Assembly (NCBI GenBank): GCA_023213395.1
Contig: CM041465.1
Location: 146,141,741 to 146,205,740 of the forward strand
Length of the DNA: 64,000 nt
Direction: 5' to 3'
From: Cycas panzhihuaensis
Taxonomy: Eukaryota; Plantae; Cycadophyta
Shown here: in pieces, positions 5,400 through 32,999 of the stretch
Numbering within the stretch: the stretch's first letter is position 1
Layout of the letters: every line of letters begins with the position of its first letter
Translations under genes and position numbers: made by a program
Notes under the pieces: generated by a model
Told to the model about the DNA's origin: nothing
Seen by the model: only the letters and a program-made list of their open reading frames with translations
Database searches by the model: none

Positions 5400-7436
5400 A
5401 GCCTCATTTCTTAAATTTTTTTCTCCTAAAAAATTTTAGATGATGCTAGTGTTTTTAGATGAAGCAGTTTATTTCCCATGTGTAGTCTTTTATTATGGTT
5501 GTATTGGTATAAGTGTTTTATTGGTAGGAGTCGATTTGGTAAGATTTCAACATAGCGTTCCATGTTTTTCTCTGGAGGGAGGCCTTTGGGTATGTCTTAG
5601 AATACTAGTTTATGATCTTGAAAGACCCATTTTACTTTGTCTACTTCCCCTTTTGGGCTTACTTCTTTGAGGATATCTTGTTTTTCTAAGTGTTGGATAA
5701 TCGCTCGATAAACCCGGTGTGGCTTTTTCTTAATATTATATCTACCTTGTAGGAGTCCATCATTTATGGTGGTGGAAACTTTATTTTACATGAGGTGTAT
5801 TTTGTCTTGTTTTAGTTGAATTGCATCACTATTTGTGTTGTAGGTGCTCAAGGTTCTTATCTATTATACTCCTAATACTAGATGTACTCCTCTAACGTGT
5901 AGTGAAAAAAAGTAAGATGCTAGTATATAATTACCTATATTTAGTTTGACATCTTTGATTTCTCCATCATATAGTAATATTTTACTTTCAAGGGTGGATA
6001 TTTAGGAATTAGAGTTTTGTTATATGTGTAGCTCTAATTTTCTTATCTTTTTGGAAGTAATGAAGTTGTGTTTATTTCTTGAATTGATGAGGACCACTAC
6101 TTTGCTCTTCCTATGTGCTCTACTATCTTTAGGGTGTCTAGTCTTTTTGTATTTTGGTAATTGATGCTATCAATATTTCAAGTTTCTATATCTCAAATAT
6201 ATTTATTATTATTTTTTAATTTTCTACACCTTCAATGTCTAATTCTGTTTGGTCCACATGACTTTTATCTTATTATAGTTTCTTGGATGCTTTAGTGTCC
6301 ATTTCCCACCATATTTTACCTTCCCTTCTTTGCATTTCTGATTGTACTAATTACGACCATTGACTTTCAATTAACCATGGTGCTTGTGTGTATTCGTTTT
6401 GTGTTTGGCATGTTTTTAAGTGCTTTATTTTAGTTGAATGTCTTCTTTGTAGGACAATGCACTTGTAAATACCCTAATGTCACACTTTTGATTATTGGGG
6501 TATTTAATGATATGTTCTAGTATTTTGGGTTTGCATTTGTGCAACTTGTATCTTCAACTTAACTCTTAGATTCCTAATATAGAAATCTAATGCTTGTTTT
6601 TGTTGTATATTTGTTTTAGGGAATGCTTCTCAGAGTTCTTTATGTACTTTGGGATTGTCAATTCTTTTTGGAAGGCATGGGCTGGTTAGATGTGATATGT
6701 TTATTTCATGTTCATTATTGTTTAGGTGAGGAATTCTTTATTAAATTGATTGGAGGTTAGGGTTCATTTTATTACAACCTAAAACCAATTACTTCCCTAA
6801 GTAAAAGTACGCTCTTTAAGTTTGTTTAACGCAAAGCATGCTTCGTCTAGGATTGATGCCATATTTCCATCCAAGAATGAGTCTCCCAATTTGGCTAGCT
6901 ATTCTTCTAGTTTAATTAGGTTATTAAACCTATATATATGTATATTCATATGAATTTTAAATTTTTATAGGCATGTATCATTCTTTCCTAGTGGTGGTGA
7001 TTGATCATGTAATCTTATGTTATGCTCATAAGGTTATCCTTCTATTGCTTTTATCAATCTCTATAGTTATTATTTAATTTTGCCTTACTTTTTCTATAAT
7101 CTTCTTGTTTTAGTTTTTAGGTCTCATAGGTTTATATATATTATGCTTTATGTAGTATGGATTCTTTGTATGTTCATTTCCACTATAGATATTTTAGTGG
7201 ATAACTTTTCTACTTATGAGTTTAATGGTGGATTTTCTGCTATCTTCTTAGGTAGCATTGTGATTTTGCTTATTTCTTTATAGATCAATAGACTGATGCT
7301 ATGACTTTTAGGATTGGGATCTTTACAGATGAGCTTCTTACTAGGATGCTTATGGATTAGTTGGGGCAATAAAGTAAGTCATGCAAAGTACCATTGTTGA
7401 AAACATAGTAATGTAAAGACAAGCCACTATGAAATT
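5400..7436 (+). mobile_element. Highly decayed L1-like LINE remnant (ORF1/endonuclease side)
   Basis: Traces of APE motifs IIGVFND (~6492, cf. GDFN) and SRID (~6848). It continues in the same orientation into RT traces right of the 7437-28232 insertion. Confidence 0.45.
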
Positions 7437-7483
7437 TGTTATAAACCTACTTAAAACTAATTAATCATAAAAAACATGAATAG

Positions 7484-7795
7484 TGTTGGACTATGACTAG
7501 TTTACTTGTCAAGAAGTCCTCTTCTTAAATCACCCACAGGTTTTTGGTATAGCAGCAAGTCACAAGTGGTATCAAAGGCTAGGTTCAAGGTTCAAATCCC
7601 ATGCATATGCCAGACAAAGCCCATTTCCTTAATGGGGTCCCCATGTATCCCTGATTCAGGTGGAATTGTAACATAGGCGATGCATGCTATGGTGGCCTCC
7701 TCATCATGAAGGAGTGTTGGACTATGGTTGGTTCACTTGTCAAGGAGTCTTCTTCCTAAATCACCCATGGGCTTTTGGTGTAATGATAAGTCACA
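7484..7795 (+). mobile_element. TRIM (terminal-repeat retrotransposon in miniature)
   Basis: 81-bp direct repeats TG...CA at 7484-7564 and 7715-7795. iMet-type PBS tggtatcaaagg at 7567, PPT gaaggag, ~150-bp non-coding interior. Confidence 0.92.
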
Positions 7796-8589
7796 AGATC
7801 ATGAAGAAAGGATGGATCTAGGGAATAAATCACTCACATACACATAATGGTAATGGACAATGAAAAAGAGATGAAATAAGATATGAGAGCAAAGCTTGAA
7901 GGTGAGAATGAATAATGACTCCCTCCTTAAGATTTCACCTTTTATTATTGAGGGTGAGCATTAGGGTTAGGATTTTTTTGCCTAATGACATGAACCCAAA
8001 ACTATATCTAAATGTACATAAAGTGTATTTTAATAAGAGAGTAACACTAACAATATATCCTAAGATCACTTAATTAATCTATACAAATGACCTTGATACA
8101 TTAACCTCTTTCAATTTCCCCATTTATGATAGAAGGTTATTTTGAGAAAATCTATTCTATGAGGTCTTTATTTGGGCCTCATTATTATATTAAAATTCTA
8201 AATGACACTTTTGTGGGAAAACCCTTATGGAAAATAAAATCCATAGGCTTTCTAAGATCTATAGCCCCTTTTCTAAATCAAAATAGCTAAGGTGGCTCTT
8301 GATGTAGCCTGATAGCCAACTAGGTTAAATATGCAGCTTGATTTGATGAGTATTCATATAACGTTTGGTCATCCCCTATGCCCTTTCAGGTTTTCATAGG
8401 TTCCAATTTTCTAAAACTAGTACAACCCTTACCCTTTTATACCCACATGGGATTTTCACAAATAAGATAGAGCGGAGACCTACTCTTATTCTTCTATACC
8501 CATAAGGGGTTTTCATGAATAGAATAGAGTATGATGATCCTATTACTATTTTCTTTAATCAGTTAAAGATGGGGGTCTTAAGGCTGAGT

Positions 8590-11500
8590 TGCCTTTATAA
8601 CTATTTAAGCTTCACCTTTTATAGTAGTTTAGTGAATATATTGACCACTTGATCTACTGTGGGGTAGTATTCCAGTTGAATTGTGCTATCATGAATAAGT
8701 TCTCTAATCCTGTAGAATTTCATACTTATATATTTGGTATGATTATGAAATATTAGATTTTTTACCATGTGGATTGCTAATTGATTATCTACACAAAGGC
8801 TGGTAGGACTTGTTTTGGTGATATTCAATATTTCTAATAATTTTCTAAGTCATATCACATCTTTTCTTATCTCAAAAGTAGTAATGTATTCAACTTTGGT
8901 AGTTGAATCAATAACTATCTTTTACCATCTAGATCTCTATGATATTGGTGATGTTCCAAGAAATGTGACATACCCAGATGTAGATCTTTTTATATCTTCA
9001 TCTCCTGCAAAGTTTGAGTCTGTGTATGCAGAAAGCTTAAATTCATTATTAGGTTCATACAATAGACCAAATTTACTAGTCGTCTTTAGGTATTTTAACA
9101 CTTAAACTATAATATGTCAGTGATTCTACTTAGGATTTGTCATGAATCATGCAAGAATATTGACAAAGTGTGTAATATCTAGCCTTGTATTGGTAGTGTA
9201 GATGAGTTTACTTATAAGTTTCCTATATAGTATTTCATCTACCTCTCTAGTATCATCATCAACTACGAGTTTAGTATTAGGGTCTATAGGTAAAGCTACT
9301 GGTCGAGTATCTTCTAACTAAAACTTGGTTAGAAGATTATTGATGCATTTTTCTTGTAAGAGAAAAAATTTTCTTTTCTTTTATGTTACTTCAATTCCCA
9401 AGTAATATTTCATCAAAGCGAGGTAACAATTTGAACATTTTACTAAGGTGCTTTTTAAACTAGCTTATTGCCTATTCAATGTTACCCATTACTAGCATGT
9501 CATCCACAAAGATTATGAGATAAATGACTTTTTCCTTTTGGCACTTGATGAATAATGTTGCATTAATATCATGGTAGTCACAAATCTCATATCTAAGTTG
9601 CCTCATTCTTTCAGACAACTTCGCAAACCAAGCACAAGGGGCTTGTTTAAGGTTGTACAAGTACTTTTTGAATCTGTAAACATTATTGTCTTGACCTTCG
9701 ATCTCATATCCTTCTAGCTGAGCCATATAAATTTCTTCTTTAAGATCCCTATTAAGAAACATGGTCTTAATATTGAGCTAGTAGATTTTCTAGCCTTATT
9801 GAGAATTTAAGGCCATAAGAATTCTAATTGTAGGCCACTTAGTTTTAGGTGCAAAGACTTTAGTATAGTTAATGCCTTCCCTTTGTGTGAATCCTTTAGC
9901 TACCAACCCTACTTTGTGTTTTTCAAAGGTGTTGTCTGATCTATACTTATTTTGAATACCCATCTATTTTAAACTATATTTCTGCCAAGTGGTAGATCAA
10001 CAAGCTCCCATATACCATTTTTTATAAGAGATTAATATATTATATTTGTCATATTTCTTCAAACTATATGTTTTACAGCTTCTGAGTATGAGAAGGGCTC
10101 TTCATTAAGAGTTAGGTGTAGTTATGTCAGTTCAAGCTTAGTATATAATGATTCATACATCCTTTCTCTATGAGCACTTCAAGTACTAATTTTACCTGCC
10201 TTATCTAGTTGTTTGTCCTTATTAAGTTAGCGGGCTCCACGAGATCCTCGAGTTAGGAATAAGATCCTTATTTCCTTAACTTCTTGGTTCTCATCTTATT
10301 CATTAAAATGATTATTTTATAAGGAGGATGTTGATGCACTTGAGGATGATGGTCATTCTACCACTATTTTACCTTTGTTAACTAAAGGTGGAGAGGATGA
10401 TTCTTCTATAATAGCTTTACCTTTGTTAACTCTACTATCTTCAAAGGATGGTATTAGATGCAAACTCATTAGTTTAGAGTCATAACTTATATTCTTTAAG
10501 GCTCTATTATCAACTTCCAATATTTGGAGTAATTTATATGTGTCCCTCCCCACAAATTTTAGAATCTGATCATTATACTTGATAACATCATTGTAGTAGT
10601 GTGAAGGTATTTTGAAGTCCAGTTTAAGCAACTAATCCTCTATCTCAACAATAATGACATCTCTGGTAATGATGATTTTTTATTATAAAGGTATAAAGAC
10701 CTTATACCCTTTCTTGTCCATAGGGTATCTGATAAAGATGCATTTAAGTGCTCTTGGCTAGAGTTTATTTTGATCTACATCCAGAATATAGGCATAGCAT
10801 GTAGAGCAAAAAAATTTAAAGTAGTGAACTATAGGGGCTTGTCCTAACCACTTTTCATTAGGTGATTGTCCTTCCTTTGATGGGCTAATAACATTAATAT
10901 AATAAATAGCTATCTAGGTGGCTTCAACCCATATGTAGGTAGGTATATTTTTATATACTAACATAGCTCGAGCCATGTTTATGATTATCCTATTCATGCA
11001 TTTGACAACTCTATTTTACTATGGGACACCTGCTACTATTGTTTGATGTTTGATGCCATTATCTCGAAGGTAACTTTTAAACTCATATAAGGTATATTCA
11101 CTACCATTATTAGTTTGAAGATAATTAAGTTGATAATCTAACTCTTTTTTAGTACAGGCTTTAAATTCTTTGAATACATGGAAGGTTTCATCTTTCTTAT
11201 GTAGAAAGTTGCCCAAACTTTTCTAGTGAGATCATCCATGAAAGAGATGTAATATAACTTACCTTTTAGTGAAGGAATATGTATTGGTCCACACAAATTA
11301 GACTATACCAATTACAATGGATGGCTTGATTTCCATTGACTTTTAGGAAAGGGTTATCGATGAAATTTGGCAATGATATAAACTTTACATTTGAAGGACT
11401 TGGAGGAGAACTTTAAAAGACTTAGAAGAGTGTTACAAAGATCTCTAAGTCTATCAATGTAAACATGGCCCATGCAAGTATGCCAATGAGCTTCTGCTGA

Positions 11501-13080
11501 CAACATTAGATGAGTTAGGCACAATGGGCTTCAGAAGATAGAGAGACATTCAGTTGGAAGAGTTTTCCAGTAAGATATCCAATCAAGACCACTCAATCAG
11601 TTGGAGGGTAAATGACCTAGAGAGTTTGGTCATTTGCAGTTACACTCAAATTAAATCCACGAGAGATAAGTGTGGATAAGGAGAGTAGGTTTTATTTGAG
11701 ATTTGATATGTATAGGATATCAAGCAATGTAAAATCTCTTAAGCCTAGGAGTTTCAAGCAAATGTTATTAATTCCTTCAATAGGTTGTTATGATTTATTA
11801 GCCATATGAATAACTCCTTGAATATTTGAGTCAAATGTTTGATACAAACTATGGTTGCATGTCATATGTTGAGTTTCTCCTATGCCCATAATCTATTATC
11901 CATTGATTGAAGCAACACTATTTATAATTCCAATAGGACTTGGCATTGGTGAAGGGAATTCATAAGTGATATATCTATATCAAGCTTCAAAGTATCTCTA
12001 TGGTTGGTTAATATCATTTGATATTAAAGATCTCTCAATTATTTAAAAGTATGCTTGTATAAAACTTGTACCACTAAATAATTCTTCACAAGCTTCTTCA
12101 ACATTATGAGCTCTATGTTTTGGTTAGAACTTAGCTAACTTATAAGTGGCAGTTCTACAATCTTTTGTAAAGTGTTCTTTACAGTTATACCAATCACACA
12201 TAATAATTTGATTGCTAGTCCCTAAAATGGTATTGGTTTGACCTGACTATCTTACGTTTTGTTGAGATGGTCCTTGGTCTTGAGACTATCAAGGCTATGA
12301 CTGAGGGTTTGATTGACCTTATGGATGATTTCCCATATTTCCTTCTCTTCCTCTTGCTCAGTTATTTCCTCTGCCATAAGAGGGACCTTGATTCTTTATG
12401 TAGAAAGCTTTTTCTTCCACCTCAAAGGCTATATCTAGAAAAGAGTCAGAGGCTACAAAGTTCATATCAAAGGTCCTGTCAAATTCTATGAACTTCTTGG
12501 TATGTGCTTCGAAGTTGAATGACTTCAACGTTCCACTAGATTGAAGACTTCAAAGTAAGTTTTTATAATCAGAGACATGTAGACATGATTAGATCAAAAA
12601 TGCCTAAGTGATGTATTGGGTCTTAAAATCTTTGTCAATTACCTATTTTATTAGTCGAAAGAGATTTATTATCTCATAAGCTCATCCCTTATGTATTTTT
12701 AATTTGTTCATTTTTAGAACAAGATGAACAAATTCTAAGTCTAACTTGGTATCAAAGTTCTTCTTGAGAACTTCAAGGACCTTCCAGGCTATATCATGTT
12801 GCTCTTTATTAATCAAGTTTTGCAATAAGTGATCAGTAACTAACAAAAGTTTTGCACAAATCATTTCATCATCTATCTCCCATTGTAGTTTGACCATGAT
12901 ATCTGTAGAAGTTATTAGAGCAGTTCTACTGGAAGTAGGTGTTATAGTTATTGTAAGTATAATAGGTGTAGGTTGTAAGTGGGCTCTCTAAAGGCCTTTA
13001 TACTTTGCAGTATTTTTAATTCCAGTGTATCACAAATTCTAATTTTTTTCCCCTTTCAATATGCAGTTGACGTTCTTCTT
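8590..13080 (-). pseudogene. Degenerate copia gag-pol (gag, PR, IN, RT, RH)
   Basis: IN: LQTNNGSEY, GIKHQTIV. RT: FLNRDLKEEIYMAQ, FVDDMLV. RH: DNQLAIHM..N.IFH.HTK, IFTK. Copia domain order. Confidence 0.9.
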
Positions 13081-13634
13081 AAATTGAGATGATAACGGAG
13101 TAGAAGAGATGATAGAAATATGTTCCACTAACACATGTAACTAGTACATTTGGCGCAATATAGATGTATAAATGAATATTATGATGAGAAGGCAAGTAAT
13201 GATTAAGTATTTTCAACAACTATGAGAAATGAATAAAAGTAATAATATTAGAATGAGCCCTAATATAGAGCTAGCAAAGAGTGGTGATGTGTCATGCCAC
13301 TAACCCCTAACTTATGTTTAAATATAGGTGAGGTTTTGATGCCTAAGGCTTCTAGTATACAATTAGAGCTTTTATTTACAATACCTGTACCTACGCTTAG
13401 TGATAAAATCTAAGTCATAGTGGAGCCTAGGTACTCTCAGTCCTCATCCAGTTCACCAATGAGCAACTATATACTTCCTCCAAAGAGTCAAATGGTACAG
13501 CATATCCCATGGCTATGACGAATATTAGACCGTGTTGATTTTAATCTTATATTAAGGTTTTAGTTATCCTAGCTAGTTATCAGGATAATCCCTAAAGGGA
13601 GCCCATAGGTATAGCTAAGCTATCACTTGACCAA

Positions 13635-13926
13635 TGTTGGGTGTAATACTCAATTCCATTAGCCATTTGTAAACTCTCTCTATCTTTTGTATATTGTATT
13701 AGAGTTGTGGGCCACCTTGATATGTGTGCCACCTCTAAGTAGTCCAATGGGGTTCTTTCTCTAGTGGTGAGGTTGTACTATAAGTATGTACTCTTACTTG
13801 TTCATAATGGAGTTTTGGCCAATTCTCCAACATGGTGTCTATTCTGTGCATACTTCATCTTTTGTTGCTCACCATTAGGGTTTGATATGCTTGTCAAATT
13901 ACTAATCCTAACATGGTATCAGAGCC
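13635..13926 (+). mobile_element. 5' LTR plus PBS of a truncated LTR element; its leader continues to ~16700
   Basis: tgttggg...cctaaca (13635-13913) followed immediately by the perfect PBS tggtatcagagcc. No partner LTR or gag was found, so the left boundary is tentative. Confidence 0.7.
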
Positions 13927-14529
13927 CAAGGTTCAACCCTTGGAGGCCTTTCTTGTAAATCCTAGTACATGTCATTCATGTTTTTGAGCTTTCAAGTCTT
14001 GTAAATTTTTTGATGTGCCTGTTTCATGACTTTGTCAAGTTGAAGATCATTTCAAGTTATATCTGATGCATATTTTGTTATGGAACTATTGTCAAGTTTT
14101 GAAGGACTATTTTGATGGTGATGAGAGGCTATTTTCAAGCCTGTTTTGAAGTTTTGTGGCTGTTTGAAGCCTGTTGATACTGCTCAGTGGACTTTTTCTC
14201 TACATGTGGTACCACAATAAATTTGCATGCAGGTGAAAGTCCACCAAATTTTTGTCTGGATCCAATTCTGTTTAATTGCTTCCTTCGCATGTCGATGGGC
14301 AGTGCTACGAGAGCGATTAACGGTTGAGTGAGTGCTTCTCGCTATCCGGAAGCTAGAAGAGACTCCATTTTCAAAAGATTTGCAGATTTTCAGGTTATAC
14401 ATATATTTTTGCTAATATGTATTTTTCTTATGCTCAAAAATTTTGTATTCAAGGCCTTCAAATCTGGCCTATATTCTTATGTATTTTTCAAAAAAAAAAA
14501 AAAAAAAGAAAGGAGAAAAAAACAAAAAT

Positions 14530-15093
14530 CTGTCAAATATGTTACCGGTGCTTGGATGTGGTGATGTTATACATCATACGAAAGACCAAATTTTTAACAA
14601 GGCAGCTACCGCTGTTAACTCAGGACTATTATTGATGGCTGTTATGGGCTTGCTTTTTCCAAGTCTTTGAAATTTACCGATGAGTCATTCTGGCCAATTT
14701 GGGAAGCATTTTTGTGGCTTGTGATCTTGACTGGATTTGTTTACTTTCTTTCAGGTTATCTTGTTAATGCAATACAAGGGGCATCTGAGAATTGGAATAT
14801 GCCAGTTGCTTTTATAAGTGTTATTTTACTCCCAATAGTTGGAAATGCTGCAGAGCATGCAAGTGCAGTGATGTTTGCTATGAAAGATAAACTGGACATT
14901 TCTTTGGGAGTTGCAATCGAATCTTCAACACAAATATCAATATTCTTTTATTCCTTTTTGCGTGGTGGTTGGTTGGATCATGGGAAAGCCCATGGATTTG
15001 AACTTTGAGTTTTTTGAGACTGCTACACCCTTTATTACAGTTTTAGTGGTGGCATTTATGCTTCAGGATAGAACATCAAACTATTTTTATGGA
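14530..15093 (+). pseudogene. CAX: Processed fragment of a vacuolar cation/H+ exchanger (type IB, CAX2/CAX5-like)
   Basis: [34 protein letters not shown], then WEA..WL..LT....[57 protein letters not shown], then [40 protein letters not shown]. Includes the alpha-2 GNAAEH motif; frameshifts, internal deletions, no introns. Confidence 0.95.
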
Positions 15094-15731
15094 AAGTGCA
15101 CCAGCTGCCATTTCCTGTGACAAAGGGTTTATACCGGTGAGACGACACTGCAAAACCACTACTTTCTGGAGCTCCTCGATCTGTTGTGGGTATTATACTT
15201 TCTTCTAGAAGTTGGCCAATCATGAGCAAACTGCAAGTCTAGCTGTGGGTCACTTGCCAATGTCTGGCGGACATGTTAATGTCGATTCTCGAGAACCACG
15301 CCCATTTACGCCCGCCACGGGGAAGAATTCCACTACTAATCTCGAGGATTTGCGTGTGGCGATTCGGATGGCAATGGCTGCCTCTTCTTGCATCCTTAGA
15401 ATCTCAGGAGTCCAATGTCCAAGACCTCACCTGACCGGGTCTTAACAATAACTATAACGTCAGTGTTGGATGTACACGTGGATTGTAGCTTCGACCGAAG
15501 GGCGTCTTGGTAATATCTGAGGTAGCAGGAATTGCTTATGTAGATGGGTACAAATCCAACGTATTACCATATTGAGTCTTTGCTGGACTGAAATAAGGGA
15601 GATGCTTTTTCATAACGCTAACGAGAATAGACAGACGAAGGATGATCTCAAGCTCCGAGCCAAGCAGAACTCAGTGCTACCGAACGAATGCTGCACGTGG
15701 ACGCCATCGTGTGCACTCCTTGAACTGCAAC

Positions 15732-15824
15732 TTCGACCCTATATCCATGGCGGTCGGCTCTGGTATTCGACCTGCATATCCATGGCGGTCGGCTCTGGTA
15801 TTCGACCTGCACATCCATGGCGGC
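15732..15824. repeat. 35-bp GC-rich tandem repeat, ~2.7 copies
   Basis: Unit ttcgacctgcatatccatggcggtcggctctggta, with a further degenerate copy near 15868. Confidence 0.9.
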
Positions 15825-16385
15825 GGCAGCCCTCTCAATACATTTGGCATCTCTTTGCAACATCATCATCGACCTACACTCATGGCGGCGAAGAAGAAAT
15901 TTTTTTTGAAACCCTAACAATTTAGGGCACTACGCATATTTTATTTTGGCGTTCGATTATTTTGGCGGACATGGATTTTGTTTTAAAAAGGGGTTATATT
16001 TTTTTTTGTGTTAAAATTTTAGATTTAACTATATTGGATAATTATTTCAGATCCATTAGCCCCTTTAGCCTTTAGCCCCGTTCACATGGTGGGCTTAATA
16101 CGACCTGCTGCTAGCTCATGAAGGGGGCTAGTCCCTATTTCATTATTTTCAGCATTGTTAAGGAGTACTTGTCACGTTTCTGACTGTATCTTGAGATTGG
16201 GAGGTCCGATTTGATTCGTCATTGCGTTGGATCCGTAACAGAGAGAGCTTTCATTTGACAGGTCATTTGACACATTTTGGAGCTGTTTTCATGGAGATTT
16301 TTAAATTCAAAGTCACAAGTTTCTATTTATCTTCATTTTTTCCCAGTTTCTTCAGGCACATATTGTATTTTCAAGGTTTTCTTGA

Positions 16386-16601
16386 TGTAATGTACCCCAA
16401 ATGGGGGGGATGACATGTACTATGGACTTCTTTTAGCTCTTGAAGAACCCATTGTGATCTTATTGTACTTCATTTATGAGAGAGCAGTTAAGACTAGACA
16501 CAATATAAAACTCACATCTCCTTTAGCGTCAGGACTTCGACCAACCATGGCCTATTTCAACCAAGGTGAGTGTGCGTATAAGTCAAGAACTAGGGGTATA
16601 A
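16386..16601. mobile_element. Possible ~215-bp solo LTR or small insertion
   Basis: Starts tgtaatgtacccc and ends ggggtataa (imperfect terminal inverted repeat). Flanks cttga/cttaa match at 4 of 5. Confidence 0.4.
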
Positions 16602-17951
16602 CTTAAATGTAATAGATTTATTTTAGAGAATATGAAAATATGTTTGCATTTATGTTATTGAATTGAATTTCTAATATGTTGATGCTTGCTTTTATGCTTT
16701 TATCTATCAATGTGCATGCACATGAACAAATATATAAATATGATAAATATAAACTCCAAATTTTACTATGATCTAGGTGTTTTACTATTACAATGAGTTT
16801 TTTTTTTTTTTTTTTTTTTTGAAAAAGCCCTTCTTTTTTTGTTAAGAAAAGGAAAAAAGTAAAAAAACTTAAAAATTTACTTCTAAACTTAAAATTTGAC
16901 CAAGAGAGTAAGTATTAGGAAAAGTGAGAGGAATCTAAATCCAAATCTTTTGTTAGAAACTTCTATAGGTCATGCAACCATATGAAATGACTAAAACATT
17001 TTACCTCGAAACTTCACTCTTCTAAATGATAGATCTCATTATGGTAAGTTAAAAAGTCTTATGGCGAAACTTTTAAAAATGAGTAGAAATAACTCAAAAC
17101 TTGTTGAAATTTTTATAAGATTTTCCTTGATAAAAATTTAAATTTTAAAGAAATATTTTTCTATAGTATATCAAATCTAATAAAACTTGATTTGTTAGAT
17201 TCATTGAGGCTAGATCTACTAAAACCCTCAAGAAATTTTGACATGCATTGAAATTTTTGAAAAAAATTCTAAAAAAAGTAGTAAGATTATGGTCAATTAA
17301 ACTTTTACTTTTTGATGTTGATCGATGCAGAATTTGGATATCATGTAGAAGACAAAAATATTCATCTTAGTTGGGTATCTCTCATTGCAAATTTTTAATC
17401 TAAACAGACAACTTTTAATTTTCACCTCTCGTAGGGCTAAACAATATTTTTTTGAATGGTTTAGGCTTATTTCTGCTATTTGTAAGCAGCTAAAAATTTG
17501 TCCTATAGCTTTTCAACATATATTTTATAACTAATAATTAATTTATAATGAAAAATTAATAGAATCTTGCTTAGTAAAGTTTAAAATTAGCTACAAAGAT
17601 TGATAAAAAGCTAATTTTTCCTAGGAGCTTAAAGCTAGGAAACCTTCTTTTAGCTAACAACTTTGATCCTCAATACACTTGTAAATAAATAAAATATATT
17701 AAAATATACTGTAGATAAAATACAAGCTTTGCATGATAAAAAAATTCTTACAATTTTAAAATAATGAGTGCACTCTCAATACTTCACATTGAATCTCAAG
17801 GAGAGGCAAAATGACTATATGCAAGTGGAATGAAGTGGATATTAAAATATAATATCTAATCATTTTGTATATTAATAACATGTGTCAATAACACATATCA
17901 ATATTCTATGTATTAGTTATAAAGTAGTTCCAGAGGGTTACAAACCCTAAT

Positions 17952-18433
<482 letters not shown>

Positions 18434-19581
18434 CTCTTATACTCTTAATAAGATCATCAAGTATTCTTCATCCACCATTGTAGCATTAATCCTACATGGT
18501 ATTAGAGCCATTTTAGGCCTAGATCTTGTTTGGAGAAGTATTTATGTACCAATGTATGGCTAAGTCCGTACACTTGTACGGTCAAAATTTTCTTTTTTAT
18601 TTCAAAATTTGATGAAATTTCACTAAGAGAGATGCCTCGAACTACTCTTCACTTCTCTCCAAAGGACTGAACTCAGATTTCATCATTTTGATGCCCTAAA
18701 GACTATCTAAAGCTGTACGACCACTATTAAAGATTTTTGTTTATTTCTCACTGTACCCACATCTATACTAGTGAAACTTAGTATCAACAGAAAGCCCTCG
18801 GCATAAGCTTTCCATTGATATATGATTTGAAGGCCTTCTCCTTTAGTTCTAGAAAAAATCAATAAAATCATAAAACAATCCTAATTGCCTATTGGAGTTT
18901 CATCTGGGTTTTTCTCCTCACTGAGAGGTCTATTAAAAAAATCAGTTGTAGATTGGGATTATGCACATCAAGATTGTTCTTTTAACACCTATTTTAGAGC
19001 ATTTTGAGAAAGTTAATTTTTGCCTTATTTATTGTACCGTACCATCATCTATATGCCTATCAGCAATAGTTTTTTTATCTCAGGAAAGTATCCAAAAACC
19101 TCCTTGTTGCATTTTCTTATTTTGACTAAGTATTTTAGTCTCTTTTATTTCTTAAAAAATATATATTAAAATAGGAGATATATTTGTTGTACTTACCTTC
19201 TTCTCCCACAGGTAGATAACACTACTTGGCATCTACCCATTCCTAGCCTTAAATACCTTATTCTCAGGGTCTATAAAAATTGAGTTGGATTTGTCATTCT
19301 TGGCTAAGCACGTTGGGAGTTTAGAACTATCGTGTAAAGTGAGAGGAACCAAAAAGACCCAATACCTAGGCCTTAAACAGAACTCACTCATAGATTTGAG
19401 CCTCTACATACTGAAAGGTATATAGGAGGACCCTATGGGACCTTGAGCCCAACTTAGATTAGGGAGCCTCACTAACCGTTGAAGCCTCATAGTGCAATGA
19501 TTAGCAATTAGTGCCATGAAGCTACCTATTTTAAATCTCCATTGGAGGTTTATCGATAGGCCCACGAGTCTAAATAATCCT

Positions 19582-22500
19582 ATGTCTAGACTTGATAGAA
19601 TTACTCACCTTCTCATAGCTTCCTCTCTTTGACTTTCTGAACCTGAAAAACTCATTGGTGATAACTATGAATCATGGAAGACCAAGATGAGATCCATACT
19701 AGTGGCTCAGTGTGTATGGGACTAGATGGAAAGCATCAAACTTGAGCCTGTAGACGCTGCTGAAAAGAAGGTGCACATAGAATAAAAAGGTCTTACACTT
19801 ACCTCCATAACTCTGTCAATTACAAACTCCATCCTACCTCACATAGTTAGCGTCACCACTCCTCATGAAATCTAGACCATATTGAAGACCTTGTATGCCT
19901 AGAAAAACACTGCTCGTGTCATGGCACTCAAGAGCCAAATGGATACCCTAAGGATGTCCGAATCAAAAGACTTCACCTCCTTTTTTAGATGATTCAAGCT
20001 ACTTCATAAAACCTTAGTGTTAGTTGGAGTGAGTTATTTAAATAGTGACCTCATTGATCTTATTATACACAAACTTCCTGCCTAATTCTAGAACTTTGTT
20101 ATATCTTATAGGTTGACAGCATAAATTACACATCCCTCATTCACTACTATTTATGGTCAACTTCTACATCATAAGCAAACTTAAACTAACCTTGAAAATA
20201 AATTAGAAAATGATTTTTTATCTAGAGTGGGTATTCGAGGCAGGGGCACCACTAATAGAGGAGTTTTTTATGGATTAGATTGAGGGAGTAGATGACCCAC
20301 AAACTATACTCCTAGTAGAGGATGATCTTCTCCTCGCACTCACCCCATTTAGTACTCAGGAGGATAACTTGGTCATCAAATCATCTACTATTATTATGGA
20401 AAAACTGGTCACTACACCACCGACTACCATCACAATAAAGTTGACATAGAAAGGGGAATCATAGCTTCAGGTAGCTACTCAAGACAACTTGACAGAAAGG
20501 AGTTAATTGAAGAAGAAGAAGAAGGGACCGCATTTGTAATAGCTCTTTCCTCAGCAGTAAAGAACAAAAATCATGATGATTGGTTTATAGACTCTGGAGC
20601 TTCTAGATACATGATCTATGAGTGAACTTGGTTCAACAACATAAATCCTTCTTAAAATTGTGGCTTAGTTGAACTTGGAGACAATACCACCCATCCAATA
20701 CAAGGGCATGGAATAGTTCCTATTACCTTACTATATGGAAATACTAAAACAGTTGGCCATGTGCTCTATGTACCAGGGATGACAAAAGAACTGCTATTTA
20801 TATCTTAGTTGACAGACAACAAGCTCCAAGTCCTATTTGATGGTGATGGATGTGTCATTTTTGATAAATATAAAGGGAATAAAGTAATTGGTGAGGGTAT
20901 TAAAACTAATGGATTGTACAAATTTCTTGCTACACTAGTTCACACTGTGCTTCATATAACTAAAAATGTTGATAATGGAAATCTTTAGCACTTATGCTAT
21001 GGTCATTTTTCTTATGATACTTTATCCTTATTAAGCAAATATGATATGTTATATAGCCTTCAATGGATTAAAAAATCTAGCTCTATTTGTAACACATACA
21101 TGATTGGTAAACAACATAAACTATAATTCTCTACCAACACTACTAGAGCACATTGTAAACTATAACTAATTCATAATGATCTTTGTAGTCCATTCACTCC
21201 CCCATCCTTACAAGGGGCGTGCTACTATTTGACCTTCATAGATAATTGTACCAGGAAGGTCTAGATCTATTTTCTTAAATTAAAATCTGATGTATTTGAC
21301 ACCTTTCTTAAATTCAAAGCTAAAGTTGAAAAAGAAAGTGAATGCAACGTCAAATGCTTGAGGACTGACAATGATGGGGAATTCACATCCAATGAATTCA
21401 CATAATGCTACAGGAAAAATGGTATACAGAGACAATTTATAACTCCCTACACTCCACAATCAAATAAAATGGATGAGAGGAAAAATAAGACCATAGCAAA
21501 GATTACTCATTCCTTGCTAAAACAAAAGGGGTAAGCAACAAATATTGAAAAGCAAGAATACAACTGTATACATTCTCAACAGAAGTTTAACTAAAGATTT
21601 GGAGAACATAACTCCTGAAGAAGCATGGTCAGGTCAGAAATCAGATGTCTTACATCTTCGAGTCATTAGATCAACCATCTACATGCACATTCCTACTAAA
21701 AAGAGAAAGAAATTAGATGATAAAAGTAAGAGATGTATTTTTATGGGATATAGTAAAATATCCAAAGTGTATCAATGCCTTAATCCTCTAACTAATAAGA
21801 TCTATCCTAATAGGAATGTTCACTTTGACGAATTAACTGATGAAGACCAAGTTGGTGGGAAAACTATACCTACTCAATCAATTGACATTATCATACTAAA
21901 TTGGACTCAATCTTACTCTAAGATAAATCATGGTGAACAATAAGGAGCAAAACTGTACCACCATTAGTTGTCACTACAAGTGTCTCTAATGAAGGTACAA
22001 ATCTAGGATCCCATTCATATGAACAAAACAAGGCTGTCGGCAACTCAATTTAACCTCAAAATCCCTCATAAAAAAAGGTGCCAAAATGGTACTTGAAAAT
22101 AATAGAGGAATTCAGAGTAAATCTAGATCTCATTCAAGAAGGGAAAAGAACCATAAGTCAAACATATCATGGGCTTGCTGCTCAAAATGATATATCATAT
22201 CAACAAGCCTAAAATGATACTCATTGGAAAGAAGTAATTAATGAAGAAATGGAATCACTCTATAGTAATAAAACCTAGGAACTCACTACTCCTCAAGGAA
22301 AACCCCTCATTGGATGTAGATGGTTGTATGAAATCAAAAAGAAATTTGATGGATTAATTGAGAAATACAAGGCCTAACTTATTGCAAAAGGTTATTCTCT
22401 AACTCAAGGAATGGATTATGATGAAATATTTGCTCATGTCAGTAACCCTTAGGAGAGTAATTACCCTAGTTGTACAAAAAAATTGGGCAGTGTATCAAAT

Positions 22501-23700
22501 GGATGTCAAAGAAGCCTTTCTCAATAGAGACCTTCATGAGGAAGTATACATGGAACAACCACCAGGATATGTCACACAAGGATAGGAACACCTTATTTGC
22601 AAACTCAATAAGGCTCTTTATGGACTAAAACATGCTCTTAGGGCTTGGTATGCAAAAATGGACTTCTATCTACAAAGTCTTAGAATGAAGTGATTGGAAG
22701 CTGATTTTGGCCTTTACATTCACATTGACAAGAATGACAAAGTCACCATCCTTGTACTGTATGTAGATGATCTGATATTCATTGGGAGTAACACCAACTG
22801 GATCAACTCTTTACGAATTCAATTATCCAAAACCTTCAAAATGATAGATCTGGGAGAAATCTACTACTACCTAGGAATAGAAATTCATAAGCTGAAGGGT
22901 GGAATCTTCATATATAAAAGTAAGTATATAGCACACATATTAAAAGACTTTGGTAGGATATACTACAAACTATCTCTTATACCCATATGCTCTAGAACCA
23001 AGCTCATTGTTGATTTTGATGGGGAACCAGTAAATAAAACTCATTACATAAAACTAGTTGGGAACCTCATATATCTCACTTTAACTAAACTAGACATTAT
23101 GTTTGTAGTAGGGATAATCTTAAGGTACATGTCTGCCTCAAAGGTATCACATTGAAAAGTAGCCAAGCATATTCTTCATTATCTACAAGGATCAAAGACA
23201 TGGTATTTATTGCAATAATCAAGGATCAAATCTATTAACTAGGTACGCTGACTTAGATTGGGTAGGAGACATTGACAATCAGAAATCCACCTCTGGATAC
23301 TATTTCAACATAGGAAATAGTATTGTATCTTGGAGAACCAAGAAATAATCCATTATATCATTATCTGCATCCAAAGTAGAATACCAAGTAATAGTTCAAT
23401 CCTCTTGTGAGGCTATCTGGCTAAGATGTCTTTTGGATGAATTATAGTTTTCTCAAAAAGCTACAACCATAATCAACTGTGATAATCAGAGCACCATTCA
23501 AATGATGAAGAACCTGATTTTTCATACCCAAATGAAACATATTGAAGTTCATCATCACTTCATCCAAGAGAAAGTAGACAAATGGGAAGTCAAATTATCT
23601 TATTATTCAAGTTCAGAACAAGCAGCTGACATCTTCACAAAACATCTTCCCAAGGAGAAATTCATGTATCTCAAAGATAAGATCAGCATGAAGGAAAAGG
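19582..23700 (+). pseudogene. Degenerate copia gag-pol
   Basis: gag KLIGDNYESWK, PR WFIDSGAS, IN LRTDNDGEF and KLDDKSKRCIFMGYS, RT LYVDDLI, RH KHIEVHHHFI..QAADIFTK. Confidence 0.93.
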
Positions 23701-24637
23701 ATTTGACATTAAGGGGGGATGTTAGAATATAATGTCTAATCCTTTTATATATTAATGACACATGTCAATATGCTATGTATCAGTTACAAAGTAGTTCTAG
23801 TGGGTTACAAACCCTAATTGTGTATATATACTCTTAAACTCTCAATAAGATCACCAAGTATTATTCATCCACCATTGTAGCATCAATCTTATAGTGAATA
23901 GATCCTCTTCTAGCTCTGATACCACATGAAAGAAGGATAGATCTAGGGAACAAATCATTCCCATATATATAATGGCAATGGAGAATGAAAATAAGATAAA
24001 ATAAGATATGAGAGAAAAGCTTGGAGGTGAGAATGAATAATGACTCCCTTCTTGAGATTTTGCTTTTTATTATTGAGGGTGAGCATTAGGGTTAGGATTG
24101 TCTCGCCTAATGATATGAATATGAAATTACATCTAAATGCATATAAAGCACATTTCAGTAAGAGACAAATGCTAACAATATATCCTATGGTCACTTAATT
24201 AATCTACACAAATGACCTTGATACATTAACCTCTTTCAAATAAATGCCTTGAATAGTTATAACCATTAATGAAAAGGGCTCTCTACATATAAATATGCAT
24301 CTAATTGTAACATTTATCATTACTTATTTTATTAAGAAACTTGTTTTACGTTTTTAACCATTAAATTCTTCATACACTCTTGTGTAATCAGTAAAACCTG
24401 GTTATTTCTTCAAGTTACAAAAAGGTCCATAATAAGTGGTATTAGAGCAACCTTCCTATCTTATGGGAAATTATTTTGGATTCTAGTTGTTCCTTGTAGT
24501 AGTCTAGTTACATAAAGGTGATGTGAGATCTTGCAGATCGATCTGTTGGGAGTCATTCAACCCTTGTTTCGACTAAAATTAGTAAATCATATAATCATAG
24601 AGAAAATAAAGATATAACATTATCGAAAGGCCTATTA

Positions 24638-24815
24638 TATAAATAAAAATAATAAAAACTAACTATGCATTTCTAGGAATAAAGTTAAAATATTACAGTC
24701 ATATATAACATAATATTTACCCATTCTATAAATACAAATAATAAAAACTAACTCTGCATTTCCAGGAATAAAGTTAAAATATTATAGTCCTAAATAACAT
24801 AATAATTTTTATTTT
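24638..24815. repeat. 89-bp tandem duplication in the gypsy leader
   Basis: tataaata(a/c)aaataataaaaactaact(a/c)tgcattt...ggaataaagttaaaatatta at 24638 and 24727. Confidence 0.85.
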
Positions 24816-27980: not shown

Positions 27981-28237
27981 AAGGGGAGGAATTGTTATAT
28001 ACCTCTTTAAAACTAATTAATCATTAAGTGAAGTGAATAGGCACCTTGAATAGTTGCAACCATTTATGAAAGGGGCCCTATGCATATAAATATGCATCTA
28101 ATTGAAGCATTTATCATTACTTATTTTATCAATAAACTTATTTGGTCTTTTTTACTATTAAATCCTTCAAGTGCTCTTATGTAATCATTAAAACTTAGTT
28201 ATTTCTTCAAGTTATGAAAAAGGCCTATAACAAAATT

Positions 28238-29153: not shown

Positions 29154-32100
29154 TGTTATGAACCTCCTTAAGCAAAAAACTTTAATTAATTGATTAAATA
29201 TTAGGTGCTATTGAACAGGCACAACCCTCCATGAAAGGGCCTAATGTGCATATAAATTGAGCACCAATTGTAACATGGACATCAATTTTATCTCATCAAT
29301 CAAATATTTGGTCTATTGACTATAACTTACTTCACCAGCGTTCTGGCGTGCTCTCCTGCTCAATTCAGTTGTCTTCAAGTTACGAACTGGGTTCGTAACA
29401 AGTGGTATCAGAGCAATAATTCTTGCCTATGAAGAATTACATTGGATTTAGCTTTGGGTTGCATTGAATATTTACATCTCTGTCTCGTACAATAATTTAT
29501 CCACATCTGTAGACATCACCCTCTACTTGTCTGAGTTTGTTCATTCTCTGTTTAATCTTGTGCGTACTCATATTATAAAGAAAGTTACTGTTCATCTGTT
29601 GCATCTGTGTCAACCAATCTAGTTGTGGTTGATTTTCTCAGAGCAGATCGATCTTGCTTACACTCTAGTTGAATCTTAATTCCATATCTCTTATATGTGC
29701 TTATCGAGGCATAAATAACCATATATCAATCTTCCGTGGTGCCAAATATATTGACGCAATATTCAGACTGAGTCGTATAAACCTATTCGTATATGTCTGT
29801 GTCTTTTTGATCTGTTTCTGCCTTCGTCCTCACTCCCTCTGTTTCTGTTTATCTTGGTCTGTCGATTAGTCCAGTCTCGTGTTGTTCCGTTGTGTCCCAG
29901 TGCGCCACTGCTCTCCGCGTCACTTGTCTCTGTGCGTCTCTCGTCTGTTCTATTTGCAGGTCTGCGTCTCTGCGTCTGCGTTTGCGCCCTTCGTCCTACT
30001 CTTGCGTCCTTCCTCAGCGTCTTCCATTCCGTCCCATTCCCTGCGTCTTCCGTTCCGTGTGTCCCTGGCATCTACATACTCCATTCCCTGCGTCTTCCGT
30101 TCCCTCGTTTTTCTAATATCCGGCTAACTTCTTCTAGAAGCTTCTAGAATTTGGACAATACGAATTCGATTTTATAAATCGAACACTTTAATTATAGCGC
30201 AATACGATACGTAGTATCACATGATTGAATAGAAGCGCAAACCTATATTAAGTTCTATTTTGACATATTTAATTAGTTATATATATTACATAATTTTATC
30301 AACATATACTCATATTCTTAATATTTATTCAACTCATTAATATCGATTATATAAATTAATTTATAAGATTCACTTCAATACATTCTTAGTAGCGGCCAAA
30401 TCATAGTCACATTCATTAATATCTAATTTATAAATTAAATTATAACATTCACTTTAATACATTTGCTATCCATTCATTGTTACATAGTGTTGTAACATTA
30501 CATTAATTTGCAACCATCACGCAAATAGAAGGGGTTTGTATTTAAAACCTTGTAATTATCACATTTACTTCCTATTAAATATTATAGGAAAGTAAGCTCC
30601 CACATATCGCCATTCTATTGTTTATTAGTCCTAAACATTATCTCTTATTATAACAATTGAATTACTAACATACAACTTCAGTTGGACGAGTCATATTTAA
30701 GAGATTTTTATTATTAATAGTGGCAAATCAACATCAACATTTACAAAATATTATTCTGAGATATTGAAGTGTTAGTTAAGTTTTACATCAATAAAACAAG
30801 AAGGTTAACAGGAAAAGCATACACTTACAGTGGCACACTAATCACGACCATCAAAAAGTGGAATCGTATTTATACAATTGTTAAAATAATTAACACTGAA
30901 GACATGGCAGATAACACCGTTCAAAAAGAGATCGTTGAACCGATCGCTCAAGCAGTCCACGAAGCAGTCCATACATCAAATGCTCTATTAAATCATACAT
31001 TACACTAGATATTGGATAAATTAACAATCATAGCTACAAATACCAAAGAAGATATGACCGTTCCTAATTCTGAGGATGAAGCAATGAGCTGACAATCTCA
31101 TTTCAGAAATCGATCGTTAAAAATATTCGATCCTCGAGATAGCTCCCATTAATACTGAAAATGAAGCTATCAGAAAATACCTTAATGAGTATCACAATTT
31201 GACCCCTGAAGAACAGAAGATAGTGGGTTTTCAAGCACATTTCAATTGTTTACACAATATCCAAACACAGAAAAAGAAAAAATTAGAAAAAATAACTATA
31301 CAACGTTTTAATATGGAGCAAAGGTCGCATGAGCCAAGAGTATGGATCCAACAAATGGAAAACTATTTTCGCTTAATGGAGATTGAGTCAGCAGAGCAAG
31401 TTTCAGATGCCGTCTTGCATATGGATGGGATAGCATGCGAATGGTGGCGCTTCGAACGAACCTTCTTTTGAGATCAACTACCAACCTAGAAAGAATTCGT
31501 GTGTTTATTCATTGAGCGATTTGAAACCGTATCTAATCGCGATTATTACTGTGAGTTACGAAAATTAAAGCAAACTGGTTCTGTGGAAGAATACGGCAAA
31601 GATTCACGAGGTTAAGCTATGTGTTAGAAGATATTCCGACTAATCGACTTATTCAGTTATATATAGATGGTCTGATAATAAAGATCCAAGCTGACGTTAA
31701 AATTCAAGAACCAAAGGACCTTAATAAGGCAATACAGTTAGCTAAAATACATGAAGATAAACATAATACCTTATGCAAAATGGGCACAGATCTCTATGTT
31801 CCTCTCCCTAGTCGACATGATCTTCTACCAAGTGTTCAACATAGACACGTATCAGTCATTCCAAATCGACCCGCTAAACCAATCATTCAAAAAATAAAAA
31901 CAGAGCAAGAAGAGTTAAGAAGAAAAAACCTATGCTTCAGATGTAAGAAGAAGTGGGAACCTAGGCATCGATGTCAAAAGAACCAGTTATATACAATCCG
32001 ACTACTGCCAGATGACAATATTGATGAAGAAGAACAAGGATCAGAAAATAATCAAGAAAATTATTATAATGTAGAACATCAAGAGAGCTACAGTAATTCT

Positions 32101-32999
32101 GACCATCCGTAAATGTCACTATCATTTATGAACAGTTTTAATCAATCAAATACCCTAAAGCTACAAGGATCTATCAAAAATCAAGCTGTAACAATCTTGA
32201 TAGATTCAGGGAGCACACATAATTTTATTGATCGAAACTGTGCACAACAATTAAGGTTATTTCCATTAAGAACTCCTCGTTTCCAGGTCACTGTTGGAGG
32301 AAGACAGGTAATCTCTGGTCAAGGTGTAATGAAGAACCTTAGCCTCACGCTAAATGAAGTCAGTATTATAGAAGATTTCTATGTCGTCGATGTTGGAGGT
32401 GTAGATATGGTCTCAAGGCGTCAATGGCTCAAGACACCTTAACCTTTGAAATGAATATTAATGAACAATTTATACGATTTAAAAAGACTAAGAATTATCT
32501 CGTTATCAGGAAAATGATTGAATAAAACTAAAGCCCTACCACACAAGGATCAAAGTGAAGAAGTCAAGAAACAACCACCAGCATTTCAAAAACACAGTCA
32601 AGGTTTTCAACTGCATTTAATTTTCTAATAAATACCTGCAACATCCGTCTAATCACCTAATGGATTCTACTACAATGAAGGATAGCGTACGTTTAAAGGA
32701 CTGCAATCATTCGACTATGTTTTGTGGGCGAAACATCTCAAGAGGGAGGACTTGTTATGAACCTCTTTAAGCAAAAAACTTTAATTAATTGATTAAATAT
32801 TAGGTGCTATTGAACAGGCACAACCCTCCATGAAAGGGCCTAATGTGCATATAAATTGAGCACCAATTGTAACATGGACATCAATTTTATCTCATCAATC
32901 AAATATTTGGTCTATTGACTATAACTTGCTTCACCAGCGTTTTGGCGTGCTCTCCTGCTCAATTCAGTTGTCTTCAAGTTACGAACTGGGTTTGTAACA
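29154..32999 (+). mobile_element. Young non-autonomous Ty3/gypsy element (gag-protease only)
   Basis: 247-bp LTRs at 29154-29400 and 32753-32999 with ~4 differences. PBS tggtatcagagc at 29403, PPT agagggagga, perfect TSD tacca. Confidence 0.96.
30904..32745 (+). pseudogene. Gypsy gag plus aspartic protease, with a vestigial chromodomain-like tail
   Basis: EPRVWIQQMENYF, LKQTGSVEEY, LCFRCKKKWEPRHRC, ILIDSGSTHNFID. Several stops. The PPT follows ~550 bp after the protease active site. Confidence 0.9.

Follow-up and report, generated by a model that had tools for sequence, protein, structure and literature searches.

How can two unrelated retrotransposons come to share a single target-site duplication? 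The question is raised by a stretch of 64,000 nucleotides from the cycad Cycas panzhihuaensis (assembly GCA_023213395.1, contig CM041465.1, positions 146,141,741 to 146,205,740 of the forward strand), hereafter the window, in which a terminal-repeat retrotransposon in miniature (TRIM) and a Ty1/copia element, referred to as copia-A, lie tail to tail inside a long terminal repeat (LTR) of an older host element. The two abut by the U5 ends of their 3' LTRs, and the data support the view that they behave as one insertion unit. The model proposed here is that a single integrase event inserted a U5-to-U5 heterodimer of two complementary DNAs (cDNAs), an account that we hold to be probable, with considerable room left for doubt. 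What is established is the anatomy of the composite, the presence of a single duplication, the exactness of the empty site and the occurrence of both spacers' letters in the joint.

The composite, its empty site and its joint

The TRIM occupies 312 bp of the + strand (7484-7795) and copia-A lies on the - strand (7802-24238). The TRIM has no 5-bp target-site duplication of its own, its flanks being aatag and agatc, and the same holds for copia-A, flanked by gatca and aataa; the composite of the two is flanked by aatag on the left and aataa on the right. The missing duplication of the TRIM is the anomaly under study and not evidence against its identity as a TRIM. The insertion point is situated 47 bp inside the 5' LTR of the host element, which extends from 7437 to 28232 and carries its own duplication, aaatt, at 7432-7436 and 28233-28237. 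The two LTRs of the host were identical at the time of its insertion, and its intact 3' LTR supplies the empty site: it reads gtgaatag-gcacc-ttgaatag, with aatag present only once at the site itself. When the composite and one 5-mer are deleted, the host LTR pair aligns gap-free at the insertion site, and host-LTR homology detected by BLAST resumes at 24247, a few bases beyond the right end of the composite. The preliminary description of this locus had given the coordinates and letters of both elements and their flanks, the lack of individual duplications under a shared aatag/aataa, and the exact spacing of the empty site in the host's 3' LTR, and on all of these points it agrees with the sequence. 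It had also called the host a gypsy element, a designation not adopted here because the sole protein evidence is a weak, sub-threshold retropepsin match in the host interior.

At the joint, agatca, both inner 3' LTRs run complete to their terminal CA, and each is then followed by exactly the spacer that separates its own 5' LTR from the primer-binding site (PBS). Thus ag follows the CA of the TRIM and ca precedes the TG of copia-A, as expected of unprocessed cDNA ends; this identity of the joint's outer letters with both spacers (7565-7566 and 23925-23926) had been proposed in the preliminary description and is confirmed. The likeness to the 5'-LTR context ends after exactly two bases on both sides, with no PBS letters beyond. 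The chance of both spacer dinucleotides matching is 0.003-0.004 by window base or dinucleotide frequencies, a figure that has to be discounted, since the joint was seen before it was interpreted in this way. As internal controls, four further LTR elements of the window each carry an ordinary duplication (aaatt, tacca, gaagg and gtgga/gtgaa), with no spacer kept after any of their 3' LTRs. The features of the composite and its host are collected in Table 1.

Table 1. Positions of the composite, its parts and the host LTRs in the window (position 1 is the first base of the window).
Feature	Position	Strand	Description
Host 5' LTR, left part	7437-7483	+	ends in aatag (7479-7483), left copy of the target-site duplication around the composite
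TRIM 5' LTR	7484-7564	+	81 bp, TG..CA
TRIM spacer and initiator methionine tRNA (tRNA-iMet) PBS	7565-7578	+	ag 7565-7566, PBS 7567-7578
TRIM internal region	7579-7714	+	136 bp, non-coding; ends in purine tract 7708-7714 abutting the 3' LTR
TRIM 3' LTR	7715-7795	+	complete to terminal CA
U5/U5 joint	7796-7801		agatca: ag, TRIM spacer; at, filler; ca, copia-A spacer
copia-A 3' LTR	7802-8113	-	U5 end at 7802; purine tract 8115-8125 on the minus strand
copia-A decayed pol	8622-11222	-	RNase H end 8622-8849, RVT_2 9475-9777, integrase core (rve) 11022-11222
copia-B, nested in copia-A	17840-23893	+	duplication gtgga (17835-17839) / gtgaa (23894-23898); RVT_2 on the + strand
copia-A PBS and spacer	23913-23926	-	PBS 23913-23924, ca 23925-23926 (tg on the copia strand)
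copia-A 5' LTR	23927-24238	-	U3 end at 24238, joined to host
Composite target-site duplication, right copy	24239-24243		aataa; 4/5 match to aatag, one G-to-A change
Host 5' LTR, right part	24244-24436	+	followed by spacer ag and host PBS 24437-24448
Host 3' LTR	27993-28232	+	paralogous empty site; single aatag at 28036-28040; purine tract precedes the LTR

Families, termini and ages

The assignment of the smaller element to the TRIM class is based on its length of less than about 1 kb, its short direct LTRs with TG..CA termini, its lack of coding capacity, and the presence of a PBS and a purine tract; tRNA and Rfam scans of it gave no match. Its PBS has two mismatches to the canonical site, and contigs of the family carry the canonical letters at 7575, 7578 and 7580. 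Within the 64 kb of the window no further copies of the TRIM or of the copia-A LTR were found. The termini and spacers were sought at family level in contigs (Logan) of related samples from four public runs, aligned to 7100-8500 at 80% likeness, the best run containing at most 39% of the stretch's sampled words. There the TRIM family is multi-copy, with a summed contig depth of 10^3-10^4 vs about 5 for unique flank and with many diverged contigs, and copia-A is extremely abundant. Contigs of other TRIM copies additionally show, around 7570-7616, internal deletions of 69-116 bp and joints at which the alignment goes back on itself, which suggests that shorter variants and tandem TRIM arrays may exist in the related genomes.

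For copia-A, 66-85 contigs per run in the four runs carry the PBS complement, then ca, then the LTR, their alignment beginning at 7800, and ca is therefore also present at the 5' LTRs of other copies. Another 89-127 contigs per run have unrelated AT-rich flanks and break at 7802, and represent the ends of 3' or solo LTRs. Both the terminus and the spacer are thus family properties, and the terminus does not reach into agatca, as the preliminary description had anticipated. For the TRIM the support is indirect: a few contigs run from the LTR end into the PBS, and in one contig the alignment stops at 7793 and is followed by 200 unrelated bases. The PBS is canonical in the family; the ag spacer and the terminus are read from the element's own two LTRs and those few contigs. 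A scan for the string TRIM LTR-ag-PBS in a metagenome collection that does not include this plant found none. A degenerate pattern of TRIM end and copia end gave 77 matches in that collection, about the number estimated for chance, and none was composite-like by BLAST. In three independent runs, unique contigs that are about 98% identical cross from host flank to TRIM and end at 7544, within the TRIM 5' LTR; the left junction between host and TRIM thus exists outside this assembly.

The LTRs of the TRIM differ at 16/81 sites (80% identical) and those of copia-A at 44/312, without a single gap, giving divergences of 0.198 +/- 0.087 and 0.141 +/- 0.039. Fisher's test does not distinguish the two (p = 0.23; 0.46 after CG/CHG masking), and transversions alone, 0/81 vs 9/312, give p = 0.21. 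The claim that both divergences are compatible with one event thus holds, if weakly, because the confidence interval of the TRIM is 11-29% and an LTR of 81 bp gives little power; for that reason LTR dating was dropped as a test for one event. The host LTRs differ at 42/237 aligned sites, and the nominal LTR distance of the TRIM exceeds that of the host, distances being only rough and not simply tracking nesting order. Every difference between the TRIM LTRs is a transition, vs 35 transitions and 9 transversions in copia-A, a pattern that suggests heavy cytosine-methylation decay of the TRIM.

The assignment of copia-A to Ty1/copia follows from its TG..CA LTRs, its tRNA-iMet PBS, its purine tract and the gene order of its pol, in which integrase lies upstream of reverse transcriptase as is usual for copia. 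The RVT_2 match is strong (E = 7.9e-21); the rve match is a fragment at E = 2e-4, under Pfam's cut-off. The length of the element, 16.4 kb, is explained by the nested copia-B, further inserts at about 13,000-17,839 and an exchanger gene fragment in that stretch. The PBS and 5' LTR of copia-A are contiguous and the inserts nowhere touch the joint; copia-B itself sits about 14 bp from the copia-A PBS and is not part of the joint. The 5' LTR of copia-B contains a TA/TACA-type microsatellite of about 500 bp (about 17950-18440) that is absent from its 3' LTR. An open frame on the + strand of the insert region (14619-15005) matches the sodium/calcium exchanger domain Na_Ca_ex at E = 1.2e-9 and may derive from a host gene, as a fragment that was either captured or interrupted. 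Two more + strand tRNA-iMet PBS lie inside copia-A, at 12747-12758 and 13914-13925. The latter follows an LTR-like end (..ctaatcctaaca) resembling the end of the copia-B LTR, for which no partner LTR was found in the window.

The surroundings are AT-rich plant-type repeat sequence (31.6% G+C over the window). Just downstream of the host PBS there is an 88-bp tandem duplication (24631-24718 and 24720-24807, 90% identical). Beyond the host, 29154-32999 is occupied by a young LTR element whose LTRs are 98% identical and whose duplication, tacca, is perfect. It shows a relationship to the host interior (67% over 1.6 kb) and has the end layout TGTT..ACA-ag-PBS in common with the TRIM.

Proposed joining and integration, and rival explanations

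In retroviruses, the bases between the CA of the LTR and the PBS become extra bases at the U5 end of the unintegrated linear DNA, and integrase removes them. If the same rule applies by analogy to plant elements with a two-base spacer, the joint can be accommodated by a model in which linear TRIM cDNA and linear copia cDNA were joined by their unprocessed U5 ends, each keeping two bases beyond CA, possibly through host end-joining, a jump of reverse transcriptase between template ends, or later repair. A copia-type integrase would then have treated the two outward U3 ends as the ends of one element and inserted the pair into aatag of the older element's 5' LTR, making one 5-bp duplication. Because the outer joints are exact at TG and CA and are accompanied by a 5-bp duplication, we infer that both were the work of integrase and that the pair was not captured at a chromosome break. 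The order of joining and integration is likewise inferred, and three orders fit equally well: the cDNAs may have been end-joined first and integrated as a dimer; on reaching the end of one template, reverse transcriptase may have crossed to the other within a particle; or one U3 end of each cDNA may have been integrated in concert, with the free U5 ends then repaired together. The central at could, speculatively, represent one untemplated A on each 3' end, with CAAG+A facing T+CATG. Untidy Ty1 cDNA ends were reportedly the subject of work by Mules et al. in 1998.

Three other routes to the joint were considered and set aside. Retention of a terminal tRNA base predicts agtaca, and agatca is observed. 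Paired microhomology at the PBS, or a hairpin deletion between inverted PBS copies, would need a PBS after both inner LTRs, which the anatomy excludes. Pairing of primer tRNA as a bridge between U5 ends was an early proposal for Ty1 that later work did not confirm (PMC6844567), and it was dropped.

Among the alternatives to integration of a heterodimer, the one that survives best is that two independent insertions struck the same 5-bp target, aatag, the second element entering one copy of the duplication made by the first, and that the middle copy later mutated to agatca. There is precedent for double insertion, in that the 6-nt junction of an inverted Rover pair in Drosophila was interpreted in these terms (PMC5932611); the extreme abundance of copia-A is in its favor, and the nominal divergence of the TRIM, being above that of copia-A, allows the TRIM to have arrived first. 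However, this account predicts aatag or aataa at the joint, where no copy of the target is present, and to reach agatca it needs one insertion and one to two substitutions in five bases, although the 312-bp LTR pair of copia-A has zero indels and only 9 transversions. The mutated joint must moreover spell both spacers by accident, and a second hit on the same exact 5-bp stagger is rare. We therefore regard two separate insertions as quite unlikely. Post-insertion rearrangement, whether by illegitimate deletion, inversion or ectopic recombination, might instead have united two separate insertions with loss of their inner flanks. LTR elements without matching duplications mostly arise by inter-element recombination, and the region is densely nested. 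However, the two outer flanks are neighbors in a single host LTR and show a clean duplication of 5 bp, neither inner LTR end lacks a base, and a deletion would have to stop exactly two bases past each CA, which leaves this explanation distinctly improbable. That the assembly falsely joined a TRIM LTR to a copia LTR in repeat-rich sequence is scarcely credible: both families are high-copy and none of the contigs listed spans the joint, but an error of that kind would not make the host LTR resume, 16.4 kb farther on, at exact spacing and with a 5-mer that matches, and the left junction was recovered at about 98% identity in three independent runs.

Several points weigh against the integration of a joined pair as proposed here. 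The duplication that defines the unit is only a 4/5 match, and the empty site, being the second LTR of that host, is paralogous rather than orthologous. The TRIM terminus and its ag spacer have the narrow basis described above. No contig among those listed bridges 7796-7801. The joint was interpreted after it had been seen, and the case consists of a single old locus with 14-20% LTR divergence.

The preliminary description had gone further and taken the joint as physical evidence that this copia family is the helper of the TRIM. Of its co-integration reading, the single unit and the spacer-bearing joint stand, and the helper does not. The TRIM and the copia-A LTR have no similarity above shuffled controls, and BLAST of the TRIM against the whole window, including the copia-A interior, recovered nothing beyond the LTRs of the TRIM itself. 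The two elements also differ in termini and spacers, TGTT..ACA with ag in the TRIM vs TGAAAG..TTCA with tg in copia-A, those of the TRIM resembling the host-type family in the window (29154-32999 included), unlike copia-A. Termini of the TGTT..ACA type also occur widely among short families (PMC13570524). For Ty1 integrase, any fragment with TG..CA ends is a substrate, which it inserts with a 5-bp duplication (PMC2939329); because the enzyme needs so little beyond TG..CA, and because common sequence is lacking and the termini differ, the helper inference fails. All that co-integration shows is that one cell contained both cDNAs simultaneously.

It appears rather unlikely that joining of two different retrotransposon cDNAs and integration of the pair is recurrent in this genome and not a one-off. 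If it were recurrent, TRIMs would sometimes enter chromosomes attached to the cDNA of an autonomous element, and tail-to-tail, head-to-head and PBS-swapped forms might be different outcomes of one co-packaged or co-localised pair.

Comparison with known systems

Genomes hardly ever retain the ends of unintegrated retrotransposon DNA, since these are trimmed by integrase. If the model is correct, the joint would be a fossil of two such ends, each with its two-base spacer and perhaps one untemplated A, and a plant integrase would have paired two U3 ends of unrelated elements. This would bear on the strictness of end recognition in vivo, on the origin of composite and chimeric LTR elements, and on whether non-autonomous and autonomous elements encounter each other as cDNA; counted across the genome, such joints would yield a measurable rate in place of an anecdote. 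One familiar structure is the 2-LTR circle of retroviruses and LTR retrotransposons, whose joint keeps unprocessed termini beyond CA, sometimes with extra bases. The junction of a circle links the U5 and U3 ends of a single molecule, a dead-end product. The Cycas joint resembles it in keeping unprocessed termini and differs in connecting U5 to U5, in involving two molecules and in being an integrated product.

Double insertion at one target site is known to place elements side by side, inverted pairs of LTR elements separated by a short junction among them (McGurk and Barbash, 2018, PMC5932611), and its hallmark is that the junction contains the target sequence once more, which agatca does not. 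Closer in outline is the maize Zma-SMART pair, in which two inverted TRIM copies lie under one 5-bp duplication; it was called tandem and was validated by polymerase chain reaction (Gao et al., 2016, PMC4717578, Fig. 2C). The two cases have in common a pair of inverted LTR elements, a single 5-bp duplication and a TRIM as partner. In maize, however, the same TRIM family is present twice, and the relevant passage and legend offer no junction analysis or mechanism (PMC4717578), whereas the Cycas pair unites unrelated partners, a TRIM and an autonomous-type copia, at a joint that is legible down to the single base.

In yeast, composite plasmid-Ty molecules are described as having been inserted by Ty1 integrase with 5-bp duplications (Kiechle et al., 2000, as cited by Friedl et al., 2010, PMC2939329). 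As far as that account goes, the likeness extends to the joining of foreign DNA to cDNA, a copia-superfamily integrase, the 5-bp duplication and minimal end requirements beyond TG..CA. The Ty1 composites were experimental, made with transformed plasmid or PCR DNA, and template switching was held responsible for their junctions, most of which fell at replication pause sites (PMC2939329). In contrast, the Cycas composite would consist of two complete natural cDNAs joined U5 to U5. In the literature searched, no report was found of two different complete LTR-element cDNAs joined in this manner with readable unprocessed ends. Set beside the maize and yeast cases, the probable entry of two cDNAs as a joined pair is rare but not unprecedented.

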